Source of the DNA: Setoptus koraiensis
Taxonomy: Eukaryota; Animalia; Arthropoda
Length of the DNA stretch: 64,000 nt
NCBI GenBank assembly: GCA_048013815.1
Contig: CM106586.1
Location: 19,902,001 to 19,966,000, forward strand
Direction: 5' to 3'
The notes below the pieces were generated by a model that had not been told where the DNA came from, searched no databases, and worked only from the letters and a program-made list of their open reading frames with translations. The position numbers and the translations under genes were made by a program. Positions 5,040 through 62,927 of this stretch are shown here, in pieces (the stretch's first letter is position 1; every line of letters starts with the position of its first letter).

Positions 5040-6422
5040 ATGGAGCGAGCAGTCGTATCGTTGGCGCTGGCCATCGGATTGGCCGGCCATTTGGTCAGTT
5101 GCGCCAGTGGCGCCAGCGTCCATCCCACATCCGGTGTCACAGAGGACGCCTCACAGAGGACGCCCGTGGTTTTCTGGCACGGAATGGGCGACACCGCGCA
5201 CGGCAGCATCGAAGTGGACAAAATTGTTTTAGAGAGGAAATTTCCCAATTTGCACGTCATGTCCATCGAGATTGGCGGAAATAACGTCAAGGACGCGCTA
5301 AGCGGCTATCTCATAAATGTCAACGATCAAATTGAGGACGCCTGCCGGCAAGTACTAAACGACTCGCTCATCCGACAGCACGGCTCATTTAACGCCATCG
5401 GATTCAGTCAGGGCGGCCAGTTTTTGCGGGGCCTCATTCAGAGATGCCCGTTGCAGGCGCACGGCATACGGGCGAAAAATTTCATATCGCTTGGTGGTCA
5501 GCATCAGGGCGTTTACGGTTTGCCCCGGTGCCCCGGAAGCAGCGGCATTTGCGACTATGTGCGCCATCTGTTGAAATATGCCGCCTACGAGGAGGCCATT
5601 CAAGAGCACGTTGTTCAAGCGGAATATTGGCACGACCCAAATCAGCGCCAAGAGTACGTGGCAAAGAGCATCTTTTTGGCCGACATAAACAATGAGCGCC
5701 ACATCAACGCCACCTACAGGCGAAATCTGCTCCAATTGGACAACATGGTGCTGGTTAAGTTTGAGCAGGACGACATGGTGGTGCCCCGCGAGTCGTCGGT
5801 AAGTTGAGCATTCGATCAATGCGTCATTTCGACGACATGATACACTATGATATTTGACAATATGTGACAATCATATTGTGCCGGGCCGCCAAATATTGTA
5901 ACAGCCGGCGGGGCGCCGTCGATGCGAGCGCTAGATCGGCGATAATCAAGCGAGCGATAACGCCAATTACGTATGCGGCCGGCAAAACTTTCCACTGGCG
6001 CCCGCGCTGATAACCGCCGACAGCTGATTGGCTCGATCGATACGATTGGCTCGATCGATATGATTGGCTCGATCGATATGATTAGCTCGATCAACTTCAT
6101 TAACCAGATTAACTAATTAGACTAACTTGATTGTTTTGATCAACTCGATTCAAACGTAACTCGTTAATCGCAATCAATGAATGGCAACCATCAATTATCG
6201 GCCCGATTATCTGTTTGGCAGCACTTTGGTTACTACAAGCCGGGCCAAAAGGACCAAATCGTGCCCATGGAGGCAAGCGAGCTGTACACACAAGATAAGA
6301 TCGGCTTAAAGGCTCTCATGGAATCCAACAGGCTCCACTTGATATCGGTTCCCGGCCAACATTTGCAGTACAAAATGAGATGGTTCATCGACAACATCGC
6401 CATGAAGTATTTGAACAATTAG
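5040..6422 (+). CDS. PPT1: Palmitoyl-protein thioesterase 1
   Basis: Signal peptide, PVVFWHGMGD, nucleophile motif GFSQGG, QAEYWHDP. Exons 5040-5798 and 6222-6422 join in phase 0 (GTAAGT...CAG); about 319 aa. Confidence 0.95.
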
Positions 6423-6892
6423 ACACACTTTTGTTGGCTCGCACTGTCGCACGCAAAACTCAAGTATCTAAGCGATATCATTTTTTCATATTTTTATCCG
6501 TCACTCATTATCCGCCACTCGATAATGATTATCTCGCGCTTGTTATCATCAAGTGGCGCCACTTGAACCACTGACAAGTGCGTCAGATATCTCGCATCGC
6601 TGGAATATTGCGCCTTGCCGGCGCGCCATTCCAGCCTCCACAAGCCGATACGAGTTATTCAAGACCAATCGTCGGCGAAATGTGACAATTTAAATATCGA
6701 CAATAAAGATCAATCAAACAAAAGTGGGCCAGCCGTCGAGCCGCAACCGCCTGTGTCACTTTTGGGCCGGCCGCTTTTTCCCGGAATGCGCCGCATTTTG
6801 CCTGCTGAGTCGACCGAACACTGTTGGCCGACTTCGGGCGACTTGGCCCATTTCGGGCGTCTGTTAGCCCATTTCGGGCCACTTTTGCCCTT

Positions 6893-7022
6893 TTTCGGGC
6901 GGTATTCGGGCGATATTCGGACGATTTTCGGGCGATTTTCGGGCGATTTTCGGGCGATTTTCGGGCGATTTTCGGGCGATTTTCGGGCGATTTTCGGACG
7001 ATTTTCGGACGATTTTCGGACG
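6893..7022 (+). repeat. 11-bp tandem repeat (TTTTCGGGCGA) x about 12
   Basis: Read directly; no spacers between units. Confidence 0.95.
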
Positions 7023-7443
7023 AGTTGAGCGTTTAAGACGCAAACAATTCGCGAATGAGTAAGTGGGGACGATGGCAGCTTCAATTGAGGTGTTTGTTTA
7101 TTGATTAGATTATTATTTAATGCAGTCGCTTATATTACATTGTATATTGTAGCATGAATGAACCATTGGACATCGTCAGTGCGTGTGAGATCATCTTGGC
7201 TGGCGCCAACTAACTCGTACCCGTCCATCCTCACTGGCCGGCCGATTGAGCAGGCACTAATTAATCAACTAATTAATCAACTAATTAATTAACTGGTTAA
7301 TCAACTAATTAATTAACTGATTAATTGAGCAATTAATTAGCCGGGTCAACCAATCAGCCGGGCCAACTTTCGCAATCGGCAAGCTGAGCTTAATTGGAGC
7401 TTTAATTGATTTGAAAATATTGATTCTACTAATTGCTAATTAA

Positions 7444-8510
7444 CTAGATCCTGTACATGAGCGATGTAACCTGGCTGGCGTGTTGTGAGTTGAGCTGGGC
7501 GCTTCTCTGTTTTCTCCTCTTGTTTACCAGTCCGTCCATCAGCGAGTCCATTTGTGCGGCTTGGGGCGCTGGTGTTGTGCTGGTTGTCGATGTCATTTTG
7601 TTGTAGTGTCTCTCTGCCAACTCTAGCAGCCTGTCAGTGTCTGTGCCATCGTCGATGTCATTTGATTTGTTGTTGTTGCTGTTGTCGGTGGTGGTGGTGG
7701 TTGCGTCACTGTCGGCTATGCTGTTGTTGTCGTTGTCGGTGTCGTCGTCGTCGCCCTCTTGGCCGCTCATTTCAGTCAGATCTGGCACCAACAAAGTGCC
7801 ACTGGCCTGCTCTTGGCTCTCTGTTGTGCCGGAAGTTGTTGCTGTCGTGCCCACTTGTTGTTGTGAAGGAAGCTGCGTTTGGTGCAATGCACTTTGCACC
7901 AGATCCATTTCGGCGGTGTTGTTGTTGTTGTTGTCGGTGTTGCTGTTGGTGTCGGTGTTTGTCGACTGGAGAGTGTCGTCGATGGTGTCAAACGTGAGCA
8001 ATTCCGTTTGAATGGTGTCAGTTTGGGTGCCGTTGATATTGTTTGTGGCGATGACAATCATGGGCAGCGACGACTGGTTGCCGCTGCTCAGCTTGAGCCC
8101 AATAGACTCCAATTCCGTCTGATTGACCGTCTTGTTGTTCGTGAAGCGAATCTTGTCGTAGTAGCTCCATTCCTGCGATAACAATGGTGACAATTAATTT
8201 TTGAATAAGTTAGTTAATTGATCGATTAGTTAATTGATCGATTAGTTGATTGATCGAGTCAATTGATCGAGTCGATCGGTCGACTCGATCGATCGAGTTC
8301 ACGCGTGAATGTCATACTTACATCACCGCACTTCCGGCAGATGCACTGGATCCAGGCGAAGTGGCCGCAGTAGCCGAGGCCGCAGCTCTGCTGGTTGCAG
8401 TATTGCTGACAGGAGCCGTTGTCGAAGGGGCAGCCCTGGTCGGCTAGCATGAGGCCCAATTGGCTGATTACTACGGCGACAAACAATGCGATAACGGTAA
8501 ATTTAGACAT
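7444..8510 (-). CDS. Secreted CS-alpha-beta defensin domain (8 Cys) with a long acidic low-complexity C-terminal extension
   Basis: Exon 1 8510-8322 (63 aa): signal peptide plus GCPFDNGSCQQYCNQQSCGLGYCGHFAWIQCICRKCGD, ending at a GTAAGT donor. Intron 8173-8321 (149 nt). Exon 2 8172-7444 starts after TATCGCAG in phase 0 (EWSYYDK...); about 305 aa total. Confidence 0.85.
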
Positions 8511-8757
8511 GGTGCGTTGTCAGTTGATTAGACTATTTATTCCAATGGTGTGTTCGTCTGACCGGATGTCGCTATTAATTATCTAATTATTGTTGGTATT
8601 ATTGTTGGTGTTATTAGTGGTGTTATCAGTGGTGTTATTAGTGGTGTTAGTAGTGCAAATTGGTGTGTGAGACGCGGTTGAGCTAGCTGTTGTTGTTGTT
8701 GTTGTTGTTGGGACTTGTGTCTAGTTGTTGTGTGTCGATTTAGACACGCGAGTGGCG

Positions 8758-8765
8758 TATTTATA
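8758..8765 (-). promoter_or_regulatory. Candidate TATA box (TATAAATA) of the defensin gene
   Basis: Consensus match on the minus strand about 250 nt upstream of the ATG; the TSS is unknown. Confidence 0.4.
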
Positions 8766-9008
8766 CCTATGGCTGTTGCGATCTGTCGTCGCATGTCATG
8801 TCGCTGGTGTTGATCTTGATAAAAAGAACGACACAACGCGACGCGAAGCGATAATTGGAAGCCGTCACGAACTGATAGTCGAACGATGATGCCATTCACA
8901 TGATTCACATTATATCACGTTATTATTGCTGTGCAGCGTTATTGTTGTATCACAATTGTTGTATAGCAGCCCGAACTAACTTGTGCTGGCTGACACAGAC
9001 AAACATAG

Positions 9009-20724: not shown

Positions 20725-21052
20725 CTCTGTGACGCAATCGTCTGACAGCCGCTCGGCCGACCGACCAAGCCAGCTGACGACAAGGAATCGCCGAGCCAGC
20801 TGACAACCGCTGACAGCGCAAATTTTCCACCAGAAATAGACACACACACACACACACAGCTTATCTAGCCATTGACAGCATATTATCACACACACAAACA
20901 GCGGATTATTGCGGCAACTAGCGGCTACCGAGAGCAAATTATGCAATCGCCGAGAGCGAGTTGTCACGAGCCGATCAACAGCAACAAGTGCCACTGAACT
21001 GTATTTATATCACCTGTAATCACCTGTAATTGTGCCGTTTGCGAGCGCGAGT

Positions 21053-24000
21053 ATGTGCACAATCGCGTGCTCGTTCCATAAATCGGTCGCGTCAGTGAGC
21101 CAATCAAGCTCGGTCAGCCACCACCATAAACTATACAAACAAACCACGATGCCGCGACACCGCAAACCGGCCCGCTCGTGCCCGTACAACGGTCGCGATG
21201 TTTCGCCCAACAACTCACCTAACAACTCACCTAACAACTCATCAAACGACTCATCAAACAACTCATTAAATAATTCATTAAGTAATTCATTAAATAATTC
21301 ATTGAATAGCCCGTCAAGTGACTCATTGAATCAACCAAACAAACCGTTGAATGCCCCATTGTCAAATAACAATAATAATTGGCTAATAACGCAACTACTC
21401 ACATGCTTGCTACTAGTTAGTGTTTGTAACTGTCGCCAGGCTCTCTGCACGGGCTACAATCCGTCGTCGGGCGGGCCCCTCAGAGATGCCGTGAGCGAGC
21501 CGCGAGAATCCGACGTCAGCATAACAAAGGTCGATTACGGCAACAGGTCGTCGAGCTCGGCGCTTGCCGACCAGGCCGCCAGGGATATTTACAAGAGCTC
21601 CTACTACGACAACGCCATCAATGTCACCAGCGGCAACAGTGCAAGCGGCGCCCACCAGTCGCCGCCAACCAATTCGTCGGCCCCAACCGGGCACCAAATG
21701 TCGATGAAAAAGAACGACAAGTTTCTCTACGACCCGGCCAGCTCCTTCGACCAGGCCGTCGGTCACTATTCGAGCGACGCCTCACTGGCGGCCGGCCCGA
21801 TGTCGGCCGGCTCAGTGGCGGCCGGCCCGACCGTCGCCAGCGGCATGGGCAGCTCATTGGGCGAGCCGGATCAATACAATCATTACAACATGAACAGCAC
21901 CAATAAGTCGCCCATGGGCACGGCGCTGCAACTGGCGCACAACAATGCGACGACCTACGACGACGACAAGCGATATTATTACCACTACCAACAACCAAAT
22001 CAGATTGTCATCAGCTACGATCACTCTAGCCTGTTCCCGTCGGCACCCGCACCCGCGCCCGTGTCCGTGGTGGTGCAGCCCCCCGCAGCGAACGCGGCGC
22101 CACCGCAGCCGTTCCAGCTGGAAGTGAGCGACGGCGGTCACACGCGGCGCAACTGGACCAAGGACGAGATTGAGGCCATCAGACAGCGGCAACAACAATT
22201 AGACAGCCCGATGGGCGGCGGCGCCAACGAGACCGGAAACGCGTCGTCGTCGTCGTTGTTGGCGCCAGACCCGACGTCGACCGATTCGTCGGGCGCGCCG
22301 CCCGAGCCCGCCCCCACGCCCGACCTGCACTACTATGCGGCGGATGGCGGCGGGTTGTCGCCGTTTGTTGGACAGCAGCAGCAGCAGCAATTGTTTCAGC
22401 ATTACACAACTTCGCAGCCAGATATACCGTTATTGCCAAATCAGCGCTTTATTACGTCATCGTCAAGCTCGTTGAATGGCTCATCGAATGACACTAGATG
22501 GCACACGAGCATTAACAGCGCCACCGCTGCCAAAAAGCCCAAACCTCCGCCCTATCTGGCAATTGTGAATAGGAAAACCGGAAGTGACCAGGCTCTCGTG
22601 GGGCCCTTCGAAACAATGGACGCAAGCGGTTACTGGCCGAACGCGTCGCAAACGTACGCGCATGCAGACAGTAACGGGTTCAGTGAGTACGGGCCGGATA
22701 AGTCGCAGCCCAAGACGAGGAAGCGCAAGAAGGGCAACCCAAAAACGACCATCGTCATCAAGTCGGCCGACTCGCCGCTGGGCCCCAATGCCACCGGGCC
22801 GGCCAACCAGCAATTTGGCGGCAGTCAGCACACTCTCATAGACACGGCGGACAGTTACTCTGATTACCAGTACCCGACCACGCTGATACAATTGCACAAC
22901 GGCACCATGCCCGGCGGAGCGCACCACATATTGCCGCAACAGGTGATCACGGCGGGCCTGACATTTGCGCCCAGCACGCCATCTACTGGGGCGGCGGCGA
23001 AAAGGCGCCGTCGCAAACCGGTGCATCAGCACGCCGGCAAGCCAACGATTTCCGGTCATTTCGCAAGCGGTCACCATGACAGCAGCAGCAGCAGCAGTAG
23101 TGTCAGGCAACCGTATCTGGATCTGATAGGAATAGGCAATCAACTGACCAGCAACAACAGCGCCCCTAGTGCGCACCATCATGCGATCACTTACGACGAC
23201 CAGGCGTCGGACGGCGGCCCGGACAATCAAGCGTTCACCCCATTATCCGCACAACACCACAACCATGGCTTGGACAAAACCGGAAGTGGCACTAGCAACA
23301 CCTACGCCGTCGTACAGAGAATACAGGGCGCCCAGAACCAGACCGGCCCGTCGCCGCCGTTCAATCACCACAGCGGCTTTCCCGTGGCCAGTCCGCCGCT
23401 CACCACGACCCCGTCGTCGCCGTACCCGCTGCAAACTGTGCTGCCGCCGGACCAAAATTACCCGCCCACCGCGGCCAGTAACGTGTCGGCCGTCATGCTG
23501 AATCACACCTCGGGCCAGCTGACGCCGCTGGCGACCTCTACCTCCAAGGGCCAGACGACCATCATAATCAGAGCGGTCAACAACAACAATCACCACCACA
23601 ACCACAATGCCTCAAACTATCAGCAATATCCGCACCGCCAGCAGTCGTTTGTGCGCAATCCGCCCTATCAGCCCAAGCTGAGCACCACCACCCGCAGACC
23701 GCCGCCCACTACCCTGGCTTCGGGCGAGCCGGCGCCCACTTCCGGTTCGTCGGACAACTCAACGCTGACGGACGGCTATACGAACAGCAAGCCGGCAAAT
23801 AGGCCGCTCAGCTTGCAGCAGCAACAATTTGACTCGTCGTCGCTCATCAAAAACAAGCTCAACGAGTACGTTTTCGGGCGACTGTTCAATCAGCAGCATC
23901 CGGCCTCGTCCATAAAATCCGCCCCGTATCCGACCAGCACGACAGTGGCGCCCTCGTACCAGCATCAGCAGCAGGCGAACAGCAGCCAGAACAGTAGTGA

Positions 24001-26818
24001 GGCAACGGGCAACGCGGGCGACATTCAGGTGTCCGCCTCCAACATGTTCAACACTCGCTACAACTCCGCCGGCCAAACGGGACCCGCGGGTATTCAGGCG
24101 GCGGCCGCCAATTCCACGAAGCCCAGGTCGAGATTTGGACCGCTCCTGGATGCGCTCACCTACCGACAGTCGTCCATAGGGCAGGCGTCCGGCTCGTCCG
24201 GGGCCGCTCAATTCAACGCTGCTGGCCCTCTGTCGGCCGGCATGGTCGGCGGGCCGGGCGCTGCGGCGGGCATCAGCCGCCGGTCGGGCTTTGGCTCATT
24301 GCTATTCTCTGGCTTCATATACGGCCTGTCCATGTTGCCCGCGCTGATGGCCATCACCGGCATCAATCCGCTGTCCGCCTCGAACGCACCCTCGCTAACA
24401 GATGGCGCGGGCCGGTCGGGATCGTCGTCGGGCTCATCACAAGCGGCCAGCAATAATCAGGCGCAATATTCCAACAGTGACAGACACATTTTGCAGCAGC
24501 AGCAAGCCAGCAAGCAGCAACAATTAAGAGATTACGCAACACTACAACAGTCAGCTGTTGTTGCGGCGCCCGGCGAGCTGACCGCCGAAAGTCTGTATGA
24601 TTACGCCAGCGCGGCGGCCGCCTTTGCTGCGGCTAACGGGGGCCACGCGGCTGCGGACCCGGCGGTGGGCACTGCCCACTTCGCGGCCATTCCCATTCAA
24701 ATTGGCGACAGCCCGTCCATGATTGCGGCTGCCACACAAACGGGCACCGCGGCCGGCCTCGATACGGCCGCTTCGGGCGCCAGTTTGTTTGCGGCCTCGC
24801 AAGCGGCCCTGGCGGACAACTTCTACAACCAACCCGTTCAGCAGCAGCAGCCGCCGGCCGCACCGGTCAACAGCAGGGGCGTGTACGCGTCCATTGTGTC
24901 CAATCAGCACCGGCACGGCCATCAAATACCCAGATTGTATTCCAGTTCGTTGGCTCACTTCACGCCCGCCTTCCACAACCATCACGATTTGAGTGCGGGC
25001 GCCGGGCCGGCCCAGCTCGACACCGCCGACACCATCGAGCTGGCCAGCAGCTCCGACGAGCAGCCCTATTTGCCGGCCGTCAACGCAAGGCACGAGCGCA
25101 ACCGGAAGTCATACGCGCCCCATTCCTACACGGCAGCGCGACAGCAGCAGCAGCAGGCATCCATGCGAAACAAGCAGCAGTATCATCATTCGCTGCTAGG
25201 CGGCGACACAATAGCAGACGGGAACAACCAGGTGCCCACGGCATCCATGTACCTCGAGGATGTGTTTGGCGATTTGTTTAGGCGCCGGCGACGCAGGGGC
25301 CTCAGCGACAAGCGGTACGGCGCCGACGCCAGGTCGGCGGTGCCGTACGCGCGTCAATTGGGCCCAATTGGGACCAAATTGACCAATGACCGACTGAATT
25401 TGACCACCGCAATGGCGCGCGCGGGCAGCATCGCGGGCACCGGCCAACAATTGTTGTTGCGACGACTCATCTGGCCGAACAGTGTCCAGTCGTTGCGTCA
25501 CAACAGTAACAATAATAATCATCAGCATATAGCACGACAATTCAAGACAATACCGGGTCAGCTGTTGGCGAAATTGCCACTTGTCAAGTCCGGTGGCACG
25601 GTGCTGCCGGCGGCGGCGCAAATCCACCGATCCACTGGGCCAATCGGCGGCCCCGAGCCCAAACGGCTGTTCCCTGGCGCCGGCTACCGGTATCAATTGA
25701 CTGACCAGCTCAATGGGGCCAACAAGTTGCACAAGTTGCCAGCAGCAAAGTTGCATCATTTCTTAAAATCGTCAGCGGGCGCCGATCAGCAGCCGGCCAC
25801 AATGCTGTCGGAGAGGACAACCGCCAATCAAATGCAAACCACTAGACAGGCGGCGACCTCTGGCGGCGCACAACCGTCGTCAGCGCAACCGGCGCCGACA
25901 AGTCAGCCGATTGTGGGCCCCACATTGGACAGCGGCAACAGCAACAACAACAACAACAACAACGACAACAAACACGACGACAATGACATTTTGAATGTTG
26001 TTGTTGCGGCAAATGACGTAACGAGAAAACCGCCGCTAGCGGGCACCACCACTGACAGTTTGCAGCAATATCAGCAGCGAAAGCAGGATCAATACGAGCC
26101 GGCCCAACAACAGCAAGCGCAACAGTTTTCCAACAGTCACACTGGCGGTTATCACGCAATGGAATCCGCGCCCCCTATGACAACGTACCGAGCCAATCAG
26201 CTGACGGCCGGCACGGACACGGTTGGCAATCAGCTGATGGGTGGCAATCAGCTGATGGGTGGCAATGGCACCAACTCGGTCAGTTCCGGCCAAGCGGGCA
26301 CCAGGCCGGGCTTTGCGCACAACAGGAAGTTGCCGCTGTCACTGGCCAGTTTGACAGCGGGCAACTCAAACCGGACAAGCGTGATTAAATTTAAATCAAC
26401 AAACAACAACAACAACAACGATGACAATGACAATAAACGCACACTCATCACGGGCTCGTCATTAAGAGCGGCAATGAAGCGTATTGCCAAGTCGCCCTGG
26501 CCGACATTGAATCATCATCAGCGGCGGTGGCAGCAGCAGAGCGGCTCGGCAAATAAGTCAATCAATATTAATAATAATAACAACGCGACAACGGATTATG
26601 TAAATGAATTTTATCGTGATAACAGTCCGTTTGACGATACAGAGTCCAACATTTGGCTGGCGCACAACATGGCCATGGGATCGGGGGTACTGAACGAGCA
26701 GCAGCAGCCACTAGAGGCACAAACCGGCCACACTGATGCGACAAACAACAGCAACAACAACAACAACAACATTGATTTATTTCGTCACTCAACAACGGCA
26801 GCAACAACGGCCGCCTGA
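21053..26818 (+). CDS. Very large single-exon, low-complexity, probably secreted or membrane-associated orphan protein (about 1920 aa)
   Basis: 5.8-kb uninterrupted ORF. ATG at 21053 or 21149. Hydrophobic stretch WLITQLLTCLLLVSVC, a second hydrophobic stretch LLFSGFIYGLSMLPALMAI, and several polybasic sites. Confidence 0.85.
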   Translation: MCTIACSFHKSVASVSQSSSVSHHHKLYKQTTMPRHRKPARSCPYNGRDVSPNNSPNNSPNNSSNDSSNNSLNNSLSNSLNNSLNSPSSDSLNQPNKPLNAPLSNNNNNWLITQLLTCLLLVSVCNCRQALCTGYNPSSGGPLRDAVSEPRESDVSITKVDYGNRSSSSALADQAARDIYKSSYYDNAINVTSGNSASGAHQSPPTNSSAPTGHQMSMKKNDKFLYDPASSFDQAVGHYSSDASLAAGPMSAGSVAAGPTVASGMGSSLGEPDQYNHYNMNSTNKSPMGTALQLAHNNATTYDDDKRYYYHYQQPNQIVISYDHSSLFPSAPAPAPVSVVVQPPAANAAPPQPFQLEVSDGGHTRRNWTKDEIEAIRQRQQQLDSPMGGGANETGNASSSSLLAPDPTSTDSSGAPPEPAPTPDLHYYAADGGGLSPFVGQQQQQQLFQHYTTSQPDIPLLPNQRFITSSSSSLNGSSNDTRWHTSINSATAAKKPKPPPYLAIVNRKTGSDQALVGPFETMDASGYWPNASQTYAHADSNGFSEYGPDKSQPKTRKRKKGNPKTTIVIKSADSPLGPNATGPANQQFGGSQHTLIDTADSYSDYQYPTTLIQLHNGTMPGGAHHILPQQVITAGLTFAPSTPSTGAAAKRRRRKPVHQHAGKPTISGHFASGHHDSSSSSSSVRQPYLDLIGIGNQLTSNNSAPSAHHHAITYDDQASDGGPDNQAFTPLSAQHHNHGLDKTGSGTSNTYAVVQRIQGAQNQTGPSPPFNHHSGFPVASPPLTTTPSSPYPLQTVLPPDQNYPPTAASNVSAVMLNHTSGQLTPLATSTSKGQTTIIIRAVNNNNHHHNHNASNYQQYPHRQQSFVRNPPYQPKLSTTTRRPPPTTLASGEPAPTSGSSDNSTLTDGYTNSKPANRPLSLQQQQFDSSSLIKNKLNEYVFGRLFNQQHPASSIKSAPYPTSTTVAPSYQHQQQANSSQNSSEATGNAGDIQVSASNMFNTRYNSAGQTGPAGIQAAAANSTKPRSRFGPLLDALTYRQSSIGQASGSSGAAQFNAAGPLSAGMVGGPGAAAGISRRSGFGSLLFSGFIYGLSMLPALMAITGINPLSASNAPSLTDGAGRSGSSSGSSQAASNNQAQYSNSDRHILQQQQASKQQQLRDYATLQQSAVVAAPGELTAESLYDYASAAAAFAAANGGHAAADPAVGTAHFAAIPIQIGDSPSMIAAATQTGTAAGLDTAASGASLFAASQAALADNFYNQPVQQQQPPAAPVNSRGVYASIVSNQHRHGHQIPRLYSSSLAHFTPAFHNHHDLSAGAGPAQLDTADTIELASSSDEQPYLPAVNARHERNRKSYAPHSYTAARQQQQQASMRNKQQYHHSLLGGDTIADGNNQVPTASMYLEDVFGDLFRRRRRRGLSDKRYGADARSAVPYARQLGPIGTKLTNDRLNLTTAMARAGSIAGTGQQLLLRRLIWPNSVQSLRHNSNNNNHQHIARQFKTIPGQLLAKLPLVKSGGTVLPAAAQIHRSTGPIGGPEPKRLFPGAGYRYQLTDQLNGANKLHKLPAAKLHHFLKSSAGADQQPATMLSERTTANQMQTTRQAATSGGAQPSSAQPAPTSQPIVGPTLDSGNSNNNNNNNDNKHDDNDILNVVVAANDVTRKPPLAGTTTDSLQQYQQRKQDQYEPAQQQQAQQFSNSHTGGYHAMESAPPMTTYRANQLTAGTDTVGNQLMGGNQLMGGNGTNSVSSGQAGTRPGFAHNRKLPLSLASLTAGNSNRTSVIKFKSTNNNNNNDDNDNKRTLITGSSLRAAMKRIAKSPWPTLNHHQRRWQQQSGSANKSININNNNNATTDYVNEFYRDNSPFDDTESNIWLAHNMAMGSGVLNEQQQPLEAQTGHTDATNNSNNNNNNIDLFRHSTTAATTAA

Positions 26819-38006: not shown

Positions 38007-38978
38007 ATGATGAATTTGGGCGGTGACACTGGCGGTACGTGTAGCGTCGACCAGAAAGTATCAGTGCATGACGAAAAAGAAGTTCACCTGTCGAAATTTG
38101 AGTTCATTAGGATCTTGGAAGCATCGGTCAATCATAAAATGATCACGTTTGAGGCCCTATACAAAGGCCAAAAGGCCGTTATCAGATTGGAGAAGACAAT
38201 ACTAGATGAGCAGTCGATTTATGAGTTGCTCAAGGATCAGGGATGTGTTATAGAGAGAGATTTTCACAATGACATATATGGTAATTATTTCTCTTTTCCG
38301 TCTGGATTAGCCAAAAGTTTAACTAGCATAAAAACTACCCTCATACATCCTGCCACAGAAGCCGTCATCATCAAATATACCAAACACGAGCGTTCTCTCA
38401 TCAATGAAACTAGCGAGGATTATTACAAATTTGTAGAAGATCATATACTAAAGCGAATTGGCCCAGAAAAAGAGTCAATTCGTTGGATATATCAGATTTT
38501 AGAGCACAAATCAGAACAAGAAAGGGTTATTTTTGATTTGCAAGACGAGGAGAATGGTTTCATGATGCTGCCAGATCTTAAGTGGGGAGGAACCATTGAT
38601 GATCTCTACATGTTAGCCATCTGTTACAGACGTGATATCAAATCTTTGAGAGATCTAAATGGTCGACATCTGACGCTACTAAACAATATTCTATCCAAAG
38701 GCACGGAAGTTATTTGCTCCAAATATAATATAAGGAAAGGAAATCTCAGGGTATACATTCATTACCTCCCATCATTCTACCATTTCCATGTGCATTTCAA
38801 GAATGTCGGTGGCTCTAGCCAATCAGAAAGCTCTGATCGCGACAATCTACTAGTGACCGTTATAAACAATATTATGTTACGTGACGACTACTACCAGAAG
38901 GCGACACTGACCTTCCCATTGTCGCATCTAGACCCTCTATTCGAAATTTACCAAAACCGAGACAGAAGCGACAAATGA
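38007..38978 (+). CDS. DCPS: m7GpppX diphosphatase (scavenger decapping enzyme)
   Basis: Intronless; LPDLKW, IKSLRDL, and HIT motif HYLPSFYHFHVHF. Confidence 0.95.
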   Translation: MMNLGGDTGGTCSVDQKVSVHDEKEVHLSKFEFIRILEASVNHKMITFEALYKGQKAVIRLEKTILDEQSIYELLKDQGCVIERDFHNDIYGNYFSFPSGLAKSLTSIKTTLIHPATEAVIIKYTKHERSLINETSEDYYKFVEDHILKRIGPEKESIRWIYQILEHKSEQERVIFDLQDEENGFMMLPDLKWGGTIDDLYMLAICYRRDIKSLRDLNGRHLTLLNNILSKGTEVICSKYNIRKGNLRVYIHYLPSFYHFHVHFKNVGGSSQSESSDRDNLLVTVINNIMLRDDYYQKATLTFPLSHLDPLFEIYQNRDRSDK

Positions 38979-56700: not shown

Positions 56701-57643
56701 CCAAATGTAATCAACAGCAACAAACTGTCGTCATCGTATTGTGTTATACAGCGAGCATCAATCCTATCCGCCAGCGGTGCAGAGCGGTGCGCTGCAGAGC
56801 GATGCGCTGCAAAGCGAGGCGCTGCAAAGTGGTGCACACCGCACAGTCTGTGCGCACAACGTAGCGAGGCATGTGATTAAAGATGTATCGTTGTCACTAT
56901 TAATAATTACTATTAATACTCGCTCACTTGATACACCCGCCTATAGCGCGCACACAGCAGACAATGAATCAACAAGCTAAGAAAGTTCGATTGGCGTGGA
57001 TATAGAAAATAGACTCTATTTAATATTTAATAGGAAATTGCAGCGAGTTGAGCAGATCGAACTGCGCGCTGCCGTTCGACGACTCGCACCAACAACAACT
57101 ACTGTTACTGTTACTGTCAGCTGCGCTGTGTGCAGCATCACTCACTGTATTATTATTCACTTATTAGCGATCGTCGCATGACGCGATATAGAACAGTGGC
57201 GTGTCTAGTTGTATGAAAATTCTATAATAGAATGTGCGGCCTCCGGTAGAACTTTCTACTGCGTCGGCTGGCTGGCTGCAATTTGCAACAGTTCTATCAC
57301 TACGCAGCGCAGCCCAGTGCGAGAGCCTAGCCAGTGTGAGCCAGCTCACTCGACTCAAGCGAGCAGCCGCAGCAACAGATGAGCGCTACCTCTTCATTTT
57401 GTTTTATTAGATATTTATTATTATTATTGCTATTACTATCACCACCGTAATAGAGAGTCCCTATTGATGCCTGCGAAATATTGCTGTCGTTTGTCGTCGG
57501 CCAGCCAGCATCACCCAGTGCACAGATAGTTCAAAGGCTTGCTTGTTAGAGAGAGAGAGACAACGCTAGAGAATTATAATAGTAATAATTATATTCGATA
57601 CACCAGTAGCAACAATCACACTATCGCAAACTCACCTAGATCT

Positions 57644-60217
57644 ATGGCCATTTATGCACCGAACACAGATAATGCATCATCAGCCACGCAATTGAGCAAC
57701 AGTGTAACGCCATCAGCATCGCAGGGCGCACAATACAAGAACAAGAATTACCACACCACAACCACAAATCAACACCACACATTATTGAATTGTGAATCAA
57801 TTGAGGGAAACCATTTAACAGCCAATAAGCCGTCTAATGCAACAAATAAGAAACAACTAATACAAGATGCGGATACACTGTCAGACACTATTTGCTGCAA
57901 TAACAAACAACAACAACAACAACAACAAAGCAATCCCACAAACTATAAACAAGCAACAACAATTTCTAATTGCGCAAACAATAACAAGCAGACAATGCAA
58001 CAAGCCAGCAGAAGGGAACAATTAGAATTGGACGAGCTTCTGAGTGATATCTATCGAGGAATTGAACGTTTACCTGATGTGCCCAATGCATCTAATGCTC
58101 ACTTTGATGCTAGTGATAATTTAGACGCTAAAAAGCCCTCATACGATCATTACAATAATGATTATCATTACAGTAATGACAACAACAACACACAGTCAGC
58201 CTATGATAGACATTTTAATCAAAATAATCACCACACAGTATCATTTGCAACCACAACTAGGCGAAGCAGCAAAGAATTAACTGAGCGCCAAATAAAAGAG
58301 AAAGCCATGATAGAGGAATTAAAGCGAAATTTCAAAAGTGGTGCACTAACATTGAGAAACTCATTCAAGTCATCCTCATCCTCGTCTGCCTCATCTAGAG
58401 ACAAGGTTGCACATCAACAACAACAACAACTACAAAATTATAACACCACTGGTAGCAGTAACAATAATAATTATAACTATACTCATAACAATAGTAATAA
58501 TATTAACACTCATAGTAATCTCAAAAGCCCAACACGATATAACAACAATGCTAACAATAGATCAACATCGAGATCGCCAACACCAAATAGGGTTACTTTT
58601 ATGAGACAACACTCGGATTTAACCAATTACCGATTGCCGCCATCAACAAAAGCAACGGCCAATAACAACAATCAACAGACAAACATGCCTAGCAATCCTG
58701 TCACATCATCACCTATCCAGTTGTCCGGCTACCCATTGCAGGAGCAACAGACGCAACAGCCATCCACTCATTATACCATTAATCAACAATTGATTGTAAC
58801 CAATGGTAACAATAACAACGTATTAAAGAAACAGCAGCCATTTCAACAATCGATCTTGACCTCTTCTTCATCTAATACGATGACGCAACAACAACCCCAA
58901 CAGAAAGCCATTTATGCAAACCCTCACAATTCATTATTGCAACACAAACGCGAACAGCAGAGGGCTAATCTAAATCAATGCTCCATGAGAGAATTTGACG
59001 AATTGGATTCTTTACTCAATTCACTCAAAATAACTAATGCACCGAATTTCACCAGTCGCGCCAACAACAACAACACTAGTAATATTATGCAACAATCCAA
59101 TAGCAACACGAATGGTCAGCAAAACTATAAGAACAACAATATCTACAACAATAATTACACTGCTAATAATACCCCCGGTTATAATACATCGATGCACACA
59201 ACAAACGCTTTAAATAACTATCAACAACAGCAACACCATCATCAAAATCTTGACAGTAGTGCACCTCTTTATGCCAGAGTCCAAAAGAATAATACACCTA
59301 TTCAATCAAATACCATTCAAAATTATCATTATAAAGCAAACAACAACAACGCAAGTCATGGTCAGCAACAATCGAACGCTAGAATAATACCTGTCCATTC
59401 AGCGAAAACTGGCCAAACCATTCAGACCATGCATAATAACACCGCTAGTAGTTACTATAATAATAACGGTAACAATGATAATAGAAATGGTAATGGCAAC
59501 ATTGAAGATGATATTAATGATGGCAATCATGTGCAGCAAACAACAATTGAAAATAACCAACATCAGCCAATCTATGGCCACTACCATAAACAACAACAAT
59601 ACCATTCAGAGAATCAAGATCCGCCTTTTGATATACTTCCCTCAATGGAATATTATCAACTATTGTCAAAATTTAATACTGTTAAGAATGATTATTGGTA
59701 TAAACCTAAAATGAGTAGAGAAACAGCTATAAATTTGTTGAGAGATAAACCCGCTGGAACATTTATAGTTCGTGATAGTACATCATTCAATGGAGCTTAT
59801 GGCCTTGCAGTCAAAGTTTCCAAATTGCCTCGGAATGTACTTACAAATGCTAATCTGAGAAATCCAAATACAACCTTACCAAATGAACTTATTAGACACT
59901 TTCTGATAGAATCAACATCAAAGGGTGTCAGGCTTAAAGGTTATGCAAATGAGCCAGTATTTAGTAGTCTGCCCGCTCTTGTTTATCAGCATTCAATCAC
60001 TGAGTTGGCGCTACCTTGCAAGTTATCAATACCCAGGGCCGATGTTGAGGATCCCCAATTTGCAGAGAAACAGAGAAAATTCTACGAAGAAGTACAAGCT
60101 GAGAAGGCCGATAGCACGAAGGGTATCTACGGTAAGAGTGGTACTCTGGGTGGAATGCGCAATTACGAGGGTGTACCTATTCATAGTGAACATAGAATCA
60201 TTTTTGATCGTATTTAG
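57644..60217 (+). CDS. Tensin-type SH2-domain adaptor with an N/Q-rich N-terminus and no PTB domain
   Basis: WYKPKMSRETAINLLRDKPAGTFIVRDS...IRHFLIE...GYANEPVFSSLPALVYQHSITELALPCKL. First ATG at 57644; the frame is open from 57539, so an upstream exon is possible. Confidence 0.85.
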   Translation: MAIYAPNTDNASSATQLSNSVTPSASQGAQYKNKNYHTTTTNQHHTLLNCESIEGNHLTANKPSNATNKKQLIQDADTLSDTICCNNKQQQQQQQSNPTNYKQATTISNCANNNKQTMQQASRREQLELDELLSDIYRGIERLPDVPNASNAHFDASDNLDAKKPSYDHYNNDYHYSNDNNNTQSAYDRHFNQNNHHTVSFATTTRRSSKELTERQIKEKAMIEELKRNFKSGALTLRNSFKSSSSSSASSRDKVAHQQQQQLQNYNTTGSSNNNNYNYTHNNSNNINTHSNLKSPTRYNNNANNRSTSRSPTPNRVTFMRQHSDLTNYRLPPSTKATANNNNQQTNMPSNPVTSSPIQLSGYPLQEQQTQQPSTHYTINQQLIVTNGNNNNVLKKQQPFQQSILTSSSSNTMTQQQPQQKAIYANPHNSLLQHKREQQRANLNQCSMREFDELDSLLNSLKITNAPNFTSRANNNNTSNIMQQSNSNTNGQQNYKNNNIYNNNYTANNTPGYNTSMHTTNALNNYQQQQHHHQNLDSSAPLYARVQKNNTPIQSNTIQNYHYKANNNNASHGQQQSNARIIPVHSAKTGQTIQTMHNNTASSYYNNNGNNDNRNGNGNIEDDINDGNHVQQTTIENNQHQPIYGHYHKQQQYHSENQDPPFDILPSMEYYQLLSKFNTVKNDYWYKPKMSRETAINLLRDKPAGTFIVRDSTSFNGAYGLAVKVSKLPRNVLTNANLRNPNTTLPNELIRHFLIESTSKGVRLKGYANEPVFSSLPALVYQHSITELALPCKLSIPRADVEDPQFAEKQRKFYEEVQAEKADSTKGIYGKSGTLGGMRNYEGVPIHSEHRIIFDRI

Positions 60218-61370: not shown

Positions 61371-62927
61371 ATGGCTCTTAATTATTATTCTAGAATTTCA
61401 ATATTCAAACATCTGACAAGCAAAGGAATAGCGTTGAATCGAGATATCAATTATTCAAGACTAGGATCAAAACGATTGTTATTGTACTTTACTGGATATT
61501 ACAAGAGACAATATATAAGTCCTATATATTATAAGAAAGTTCAAATCAACTCAGTGAGATCCATACACTCTCTGGTGGAGGATAATAGGCAGCCCAGGAA
61601 GCTCTTGCAGAACAACGATACAGTGAATTATCAAGTCAAGAAAGAATCGCCGGAATTTAGCTATAAGATCATCGACAATGTGAAAAATAAATATGGCGAC
61701 ACTGAGGAGAAAGGCCATTTCAGACATGATGATGTGGAGATCTCGATAGATGAAAATTCAAAGCTTGTATTCAGTCTAACATGGCTACGCCACTCATGTA
61801 GATGTGATCAATGTTTGCATCAGCATTCTAGACAGAGATTGAGTGATCTAACTAAATATGACAAAACAAGTTTTCAGATAGACACATGCACAATAGTTGA
61901 TGGCAACAAGATGAAAGAGATTCATGTTAATTGGATTGATGGACACCGGAGTAAATTTGGTCTAGAATGGCTACTAGAAGCGGCTAAATCATGCGAAAGC
62001 TTCGGATCATACTTGGACAGCATCAATTTAAATGATGAACAATCAAGGTTGCATCTTCCTCGGGATGACTATTATACAATTGTAGGTCAAGATAGAGATT
62101 CTAACAAGAATTATTGGACAGGTGAACAAATTGTCAATCTACTTAGGCCTGTAGAATATGATGACCTGATTGATAGAGAACATGGCGACAACTCTGCCAT
62201 ATACAGTCTGATAAAACAGTTGTATCAATACGGAATAGCCAAGATAGTTAATGTCCCAACGGAGAGAGATCAATTGCTACAAGTAGCAAGGCGACTTGCA
62301 TACGAGCGTCCAACTGGATACGGTACAACATTTGATGTAATTGCTGAACCAAGTGATCGCATTCTGGCGTATACAGCAAAGGAATTTGATCTACATTGCG
62401 ATTTACCGTATAGAGAAAGTCTTCCAGGTACACAAATGCTGCATTGTCTAATTAATTCAGAGGAAGACGGTGAAAGTTATTTTTGTGATTCTTTCAATGC
62501 TTGTAAACAATTGAAAGAACAAAATACGTATTACTACAATATACTCAGTTGTTTGCCTGTGACATTCTCAGTTATTGATCCATACAGGGAAGTTAAACTA
62601 AGACAACACTGGCCAATCATCACAAAAAATTATCTTGGTCAGTTAGATCGAGTGCACCATTCACCTTTTATGTTGCCACCCCTGGCACGTGTGAATCAGG
62701 TCAAATTGTTCTATGAGGCTTATCATCAATTCAGCAAATTGCTCCATAGCAATTCGAATAAGTTTATAACAAAAATGTGTCCGGGCGACCTGTATATTTT
62801 CCAAAATGGCAGAGTTCTCCATGGGAGAAATCATTATGACCCGCACAAAAGTAAGAGATTCCTGCAAGGTTGTTACATGGATTGGGATGAGATCGAGGGT
62901 CTATATGAAAAATTCTACTTGCGATGA
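61371..62927 (+). CDS. BBOX1: Gamma-butyrobetaine dioxygenase family (BBOX/TMLHE) 2-oxoglutarate/Fe(II) enzyme
   Basis: Zn-binding WLRHSCRCDQC, HxD motif HCDLPY, FQNGRVLHGR, RFLQGCYMDWD; intronless. BBOX versus TMLHE is not firmly resolved. Confidence 0.85.
   Translation: MALNYYSRISIFKHLTSKGIALNRDINYSRLGSKRLLLYFTGYYKRQYISPIYYKKVQINSVRSIHSLVEDNRQPRKLLQNNDTVNYQVKKESPEFSYKIIDNVKNKYGDTEEKGHFRHDDVEISIDENSKLVFSLTWLRHSCRCDQCLHQHSRQRLSDLTKYDKTSFQIDTCTIVDGNKMKEIHVNWIDGHRSKFGLEWLLEAAKSCESFGSYLDSINLNDEQSRLHLPRDDYYTIVGQDRDSNKNYWTGEQIVNLLRPVEYDDLIDREHGDNSAIYSLIKQLYQYGIAKIVNVPTERDQLLQVARRLAYERPTGYGTTFDVIAEPSDRILAYTAKEFDLHCDLPYRESLPGTQMLHCLINSEEDGESYFCDSFNACKQLKEQNTYYYNILSCLPVTFSVIDPYREVKLRQHWPIITKNYLGQLDRVHHSPFMLPPLARVNQVKLFYEAYHQFSKLLHSNSNKFITKMCPGDLYIFQNGRVLHGRNHYDPHKSKRFLQGCYMDWDEIEGLYEKFYLR

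Follow-up and report, generated by a model that had tools for sequence, protein, structure and literature searches.

A C-extended CS-alpha-beta defensin precursor gene of mollusc plan, in unusual form, predicted in the mite Setoptus koraiensis

Defensins of the CS-alpha-beta class are normally small and cationic, with propieces that are short and evolve fast. In plants, those of class II, of which NaD1 is an example, carry an acidic C-terminal propeptide of about 33 residues that serves vacuolar sorting. For the gene reported here the closest described systems are those of molluscs. The defensins of Mytilus (MGD-1, 1FJN) and of Crassostrea gigas (2B68) are cationic, and in MGD precursors the mature peptide, which directly follows the signal peptide, has an acidic C-terminal extension of about 20 residues. 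In the mytilins and myticins of mussels a short, fast-diverging anionic extension is thought to neutralise a peptide of charge +4 to +10 until its release, and exon shuffling is the proposed source of the C-terminal region of the mussel precursors (PMC7168163). Canonical tick defensins have six cysteines and an N-terminal propiece that ends in the furin motif (R)VRR and precedes a C-terminal mature peptide of about 4 kDa (PMC11752866). What has been described for mites that feed on plants? The annotation of Tetranychus urticae is reportedly without defensins (PMC5474072), and the paper on the Aculops lycopersici genome does not mention them; its list of predicted secreted proteins has 612 entries, of which nearly all have no counterpart in spider mites (PMC7738191).

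The gene lies on the minus strand of contig CM106586.1 of Setoptus koraiensis, in a window of 64,000 nt, this being the whole stretch of DNA that was analysed (positions 19,902,001 to 19,966,000 of the contig). Judged from its sequence, it is a gene for a C-extended CS-alpha-beta defensin precursor of the mollusc plan, in unusual form. We know of no immune effectors in eriophyoid mites. The interest of the gene, whose setting is a plant-feeding acariform mite lineage, is that a defensin core has been frozen, has lost its positive charge and has been joined to a long orphan region with a constrained first third. Such an architecture is in keeping with the view that defensin genes evolve by exon shuffling, and it suggests a role that goes beyond attack on membranes. 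Its features are collected in Table 1. A preliminary description, made from the DNA letters, had pointed to two open reading frames with a GTAAGT donor, a CAG acceptor and a phase-0 join across a 149-nt intron, and every one of these elements was reproduced from the sequence; the CTAAC at 8213 is branch-point-like, and a pyrimidine-rich stretch precedes the acceptor. The two ORFs are in different genomic frames, 149 not being a multiple of 3, so that splicing is the only way in which they can be joined. The full predicted precursor has 305 residues before removal of the signal peptide, and the order proposed for it, i.e., signal peptide, defensin and then a long acidic tail, is borne out by the translations, the eight-cysteine framework and the charge. 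Searches were run on the exon 1 and exon 2 products separately, not on the joined 305-residue product. Within the 64-kb window tblastn found no paralogue, and an Rfam scan of the window gave no match.

Table 1. Features of the defensin gene, listed in the direction of transcription (positions are those of the window; L001 is the contig of another species described in the text)
Feature	Positions	Strand	Details
Promoter block, ~100 nt	8807-8906	minus	just upstream of TATA box; L001 counterpart about 590-690
TATA box TATAAATA, then C	8758-8765	minus	~255 nt upstream of ATG
Exon 1	8510-8322	minus	ATG at 8510; 63 codons; end ...CRKCGD
Start codon and signal peptide, residues 1-23	8442-8510	minus	predicted cleavage between ...MLA and DQGCPF
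Defensin domain, residues 24-63	8322-8441	minus	8 Cys; matches to solved defensins; AF2
Intron, phase 0	8321-8173 (149 nt)	minus	GTAAGT (8321-8316)...CTAAC (8213)...TCGCAG
Exon 2, phase 0	8172-7444	minus	242 codons, EWSYYDKIRF... to stop
Conserved proximal tail module, tail residues 1-78	7939-8172	minus	low omega; four N-glycosylation sequons
Acidic T/N/D/S/Q-rich distal tail, tail residues 79-242	7447-7938	minus	conserved islands; in-frame indels
Polybasic motif KRRKQR, tail residues 218-223	7521-7504	minus	candidate furin-type site or NLS-like motif
Stop codon TAG	7446-7444	minus	directly after conserved ...MYRI
Candidate polyadenylation signal ATTAAA	7401-7406	minus	from motif scan, inferred; 38 nt past stop

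With the tail as query a single database protein is found, P0001 (342 aa, 57% identical), and it is encoded on a Logan contig of 3369 nt, L001. That contig comes from another species and, read with the standard code, has the same layout: an ATG at 1006, a first exon that ends ...CRKCGD at 1194, an intron of 111 nt at 1195-1305 (GTAAGT...ATAG), and a second exon that opens with EWSYYDKIRF... at 1306 and closes with a TAG after ...MYRI. In the two species the donor and the acceptor are at identical codon positions. As it stands in the database P0001, from 991-2019 of L001, has the appearance of an intron-less fusion, and this was rejected: in the DNA its two additional Gln residues prove to be TAG codons, the gene call having read TAG as Gln (an alternative code), so that the exons were fused through the intron and the true stop was overrun. 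Against shuffled sequences the exon alignments between window and L001 reach z=20-23; the intron interior, at z=2.3, is not alignable, and its lengths are 149 vs 111 nt. A third and more distant lineage is represented by P0002, 61% identical over exon 1, in which the defensin ends at the same point (...CRKCGQ) and is directly followed by VS, i.e., by GT-type codons. On its contig (SRR18067565, 1697 nt) a 232-aa ORF that shares strand and frame with the defensin exon begins 157 nt further downstream, and is a candidate tail only.

Selection was estimated as omega by the Nei-Gojobori method (NG86) on the one pair of window and L001, for which dS is about 1.1-1.5 and synonymous sites are near saturation. 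With that qualification, the mature defensin, with 38 of 39 residues identical, has an omega of 0.008, and the signal peptide, which keeps its hydrophobicity despite variation, one of 0.24. Tail residues 1-78 are almost invariant (omega 0.069 at dS 1.1); beyond residue 78 the value is 0.16-0.6, and for the whole tail it is 0.235. All the indels between the two tails are multiples of 3. Two more samples, X1 and X2, provide short contigs that are 97-98% identical to the window, lie within exon 2 and have indels of 3 nt only; all four of the X1 substitutions in exon 2 are synonymous. For exon 2 there is no conserved start, since its first in-frame Met, residue 38, is Ile in L001, where the first Met is residue 87.

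Might the intron be left in place? In that case the main product would be an intron-retaining peptide of 83 residues, and exon 2 would belong to another transcript or would go untranslated. Reads or contigs of four runs were placed on 7300-8700. Those of X1 and X2 (Logan libraries labelled 'RNA?') are contigs of 215-282 nt, with a depth of 2.6-4.9, that cover 7484-7795 inside exon 2 only, and X9 and X12, two polyA/oligo-dT RNA-seq runs of 2026 labelled as the same species, yielded 0 reads and are uninformative on the splice. Among the four runs there is no junction-spanning read or contig, coverage being limited to 7484-7795; of the proposal that this is one spliced gene, the layout is upheld by L001 at identical codons, and the splice is a prediction from sequence and comparison. 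The 83-aa ORF does exist, the retained frame stopping after 20 extra codons, and in length that extension of about 20 residues resembles those of mussel precursors; an exact look-up of the ORF gave no database record. However, the read-through extension is conserved neither in sequence nor in length: it has 20 aa in the window, 36 in L001, where the retained frame stops at the acceptor TAG, and 7 in P0002, and the three are unrelated. Further, purifying selection acts strongly on exon 2 in the very frame that splicing sets, yet this exon has neither a conserved start nor its own signal peptide. A second promoter would not fit in an intron so short and so divergent, and both splice sites are conserved to the base. 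That the splice goes unused, or is minor, is on these grounds very unlikely.

The shared layout, the selection, the want of a start in exon 2 and the conservation of the promoter (below) are instead strong evidence that the two exons belong to a single transcription unit and are translated together into one protein. Additional support for this joined product comes from the tail with its four conserved N-glycosylation sequons, as they make sense only behind the signal peptide of exon 1. The 8322/8172 splice is, then, very probably used.

What sort of defensin does exon 1 encode? Of all 19-residue segments of the product the most hydrophobic is the one that starts at residue 4, and it is the -1/-3 rule that predicts the signal cleavage of Table 1; the defensin starts 1-3 residues past that point, with no N-terminal propiece. 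Its cysteines are spaced C-x6-C-x3-C-x4-C-x4-C-x7-C-x-C-x2-C, and all eight (C27, C34, C38, C43, C48, C56, C58 and C61) align with cysteines of the oyster defensin 2B68 and are invariant in the three lineages. A profile made from these lineages matches 2B68 (E=4e-4) and the scorpion defensin BmKDfsin3 (5XA6, E=5e-4) among solved structures, then micasin (2LR5, E=0.04), with weaker matches to ASABF and to MGD-1 (1FJN E=5, aligned to residues 26-62). In Pfam no family is above cut-off for the defensin, and the best, Myticin-prepro (PF10690), reaches 13 bits vs the 28.5 needed, on exon 1 only. An AF2 model of moderate confidence (pLDDT 65) places a helix at residues 33-40 and strands at 45-47 and 57-59. 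Each of its 29 Foldseek matches in the PDB is a CS-alpha-beta peptide, NaD1 being among the weak ones, with every E at 0.7 or above, as is expected for so small a domain. The charge is another matter: the head is not cationic, its net charge being 0 for residues 24-62 or -1 for 24-63 (pI 5.4-6.7), and -2 in the L001 orthologue. In cysteine framework, in similarity and in modelled fold the head is nevertheless a four-disulfide CS-alpha-beta defensin of the MGD-1/oyster type, while lacking the cationic character. For such a fold lipid II or another microbial target would be the default expectation as ligand, by analogy.

The tail carries a charge of -22 (-19 in L001) at a pI of 4.1, has no Cys, and is composed of T 16%, N 11%, S 10%, D 10% and P about 2%. 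The preliminary description had called it mucin-like, a label that does not suit a tail with so little Pro, no protein repeats and 78 strongly constrained residues at its start. A mucin (PTS) domain was likewise rejected: N and D are equally abundant and there are no protein-length repeats, TRF finding in exon 2 codon-level microsatellites only. The sequons to which attention had been drawn, NKT, NQT, NQS and NGT, are present at tail N13, N17, N32 and N47, and all four are kept in L001, so the predicted N-glycosylation would be shared by the two species. They fall in tail residues 1-78, which, going by conservation, appear to be an orphan module constrained in the manner of a folded or binding module. 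The distal tail, which is acidic and of low complexity, has conserved islands, namely TTESQEQASGTLLVPDLTEM, the stretch NNKSN-IDDGT-TD-LLELAE-HYNK, whose ...LLELAE-HYNK part is helix-forming, and the C-terminal MYRI. AF2 on the alignment of two sequences gives the tail a pLDDT of 42, with helices at 177-194 and 206-227 only, and at such low confidence the distal tail may be mostly unstructured. The KRRKQR motif, also noticed earlier, is there, about 20 residues from the C-terminus and in the least constrained stretch of the tail; in L001 a polybasic KRKR is at tail residue 216, about as far from the C-terminus, in a different alignment column. At the invariant junction of head and tail neither a dibasic site nor any other cleavage motif can be recognised.

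No search route led to relatives of the tail other than P0001, and by these searches the tail is lineage-specific. A word-indexed protein search, with the whole tail and with residues 1-78, returned P0001 only. HMMER with the two-species tail profile gave 0 matches among 1.84 billion representatives, and as P0001's own cluster was missed too, composition filtering may blunt that search. There were likewise 0 relatives in a JGI metagenome scan, 0 matches of the tail profile to the PDB and 0 of the tail to Pfam. Myb/MADF labels from the ESM Atlas were set aside, their scores of 0.58-0.68 being at noise level.

How does this locus compare with the known systems? To the mollusc defensins it is alike in the spacing of the eight cysteines, one loop residue apart, in an N-terminal GCP motif, a GYC motif and the C-x-C-x2-CG ending, and in a mature peptide that comes directly after the signal peptide and is extended C-terminally by acidic sequence. 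It is unlike them in that their peptides are cationic and the mite head is 0 to -2, in that their roughly 20 acidic residues compare with a C-terminal part of 242 residues with a conserved sequon-bearing module, in that the host is a mite, and in that similarity is only at E of about 1e-3 to 1e-4, and at E=5 for 1FJN. With mytilin and myticin precursors it shares the order of signal peptide, mature peptide and anionic C-extension. However, those have 83-106 aa with a rapidly diverging extension, whereas the mite product has 305 and its extension is constrained and balances nothing; nor is there homology to their prepro family at the Pfam cut-off. Among arachnids BmKDfsin3 is one of the two best core matches (E=5e-4 to 8e-4), has GCPF-x-G-x-C in common with the head and is, like it, chelicerate. 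Unlike the prepro-defensins of ticks and insects, the mite protein has eight cysteines, no N-terminal propiece and 242 residues after the defensin. Plant class II defensins also have a defensin followed by an acidic C-terminal part, but they are unrelated to it in sequence and have another cysteine framework.

The likeness to mussels invites the classical interpretation, in which the whole tail is a C-terminal pro-region for folding or sorting, is cut at or near the junction, between ...CRKCG and D-EW, and leaves one active product only, the free defensin with its roughly 39 residues. Signal peptide, mature peptide and anionic C-extension are in the order of the known mussel CS-alpha-beta plan (PMC7168163), the tail is indeed anionic, the defensin ends ...CG like MGD-1 (1FJN) and the best Pfam match, below cut-off as it is, is Myticin-prepro. 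However, as the defensin has a charge of 0 to -2 there is nothing for the -22 tail to neutralise, and with this the rationale is lost for the self-inhibiting or neutralising prodomain that had earlier been entertained. In addition, the extension is about 5-10 times the mussel length, an omega of 0.07 for tail residues 1-78 is far from the 'extremely divergent' mussel extensions (PMC7168163), and the junction lacks a recognisable cleavage motif. Such a pre-pro-defensin is possible, though we doubt it. An uncharged peptide, a longer extension, a proximal third no less constrained than the head and the missing dibasic site together favour a modular protein.

In that modular reading, to which we give an even chance of being right, the product would be a secreted N-glycosylated protein in which the tail has a function of its own and remains with the defensin head at least until secretion is complete. 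One TATA-driven, two-exon gene on the minus strand would give one secreted protein: exon 1 would supply the signal peptide and the unusually uncharged four-disulfide CS-alpha-beta defensin, and phase-0 splicing would attach the lineage-specific tail, there being no dibasic site where they meet. The tail would be a glycosylated carrier or partner module accompanying the head, possibly trimmed at its polybasic site, and would not be a disposable propiece for charge neutralisation.

Where would such a protein act? One proposal is that it is an effector that salivary glands deliver into plant cells, its head mimicking or binding the targets of plant cysteine-rich peptides and its KRRKQR/KRKR being a nuclear-localisation signal. 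A defensin that is not cationic does suggest a role other than membrane attack, the polybasic motif is in both species, and with the effectors of eriophyoids unknown, secreted orphan proteins are candidates (PMC7738191). However, the RNA-labelled contigs are short and of a depth (2.6-4.9) unlike that of an abundant salivary transcript, a head with 38 of 39 residues identical runs counter to the rapid evolution that is usual in host-facing effectors, and genes of immunity or of epithelia would just as typically have a strong TATA promoter and a conserved block. We regard a plant-directed effector as improbable, although it would be compatible with the gene model. The tethered defensin of the preliminary description is, like its salivary effector, speculative. 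Quite improbable too is a form of the modular reading in which the head is never released and the protein stands for a new class of secreted modular glycoprotein, a CS-alpha-beta binding head on a lineage-specific carrier that eriophyoid mites would deliver to a plant or symbiont interface, with the polybasic motif directing entry inside host cells. If an unreleased head were in fact delivered to the plant, it would be the first defined eriophyoid effector and one derived from an immune peptide.

Upstream of the coding region the two species have TATA boxes of TAATAAATAC type: TATAAATAC at 8765-8757 in the window recurs near 690 in L001, about 315 nt upstream of its ATG. Between window and L001 the promoter block shows long identical runs, e.g., GCTTCCAATTATCGCTTCG and TTCTTTTTATCAAGATCAACA, and reaches z=12.5 against shuffles, compared with z=5 only for the 5'UTR. 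This block of about 100 nt, nearly identical in two species whose synonymous sites are close to saturation, is likely the key regulatory module of the gene. The block contains a GATA-like TTATCAAG motif and a CATGTG motif. The intron consists largely of tandem repeats of 16 nt and 13 nt (8210-8298; TRF). In the 5'UTR there are 12-nt repeats of CACCACTAATAA type (8586-8655), and in the 3' flank TAATTAA-rich tandem repeats of 12/24 nt (7256-7339). Short tandem duplications seem to be the way in which the non-coding parts of the locus grow.

Downstream of the gene, some 400 nt away, 6821-7023 holds an array whose tandem repeat units are 11 nt (x12, 95% matches) and 22 nt long, from which ORFs with FGRFSGDFRAI-type repeats arise on both strands (6615-7084). 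At the syntenic place of L001, 2354-2805, there is a similar FGRF...-type ORF. The array may be a 3' regulatory element, another gene or a satellite. Further along the plus strand, an uninterrupted ORF of 1928 aa (21032-26818) lies where the window is richest in GC (0.60, with strong AT and GC skew) and has no Pfam match at E<=0.001. Also on the plus strand are ordinary animal genes, for palmitoyl-protein thioesterase (5040-5807), the scavenger decapping enzyme DcpS (38007-38978), an SH2-domain protein (57539-60217) and a TauD/gamma-butyrobetaine-hydroxylase-like dioxygenase (61371-62927).
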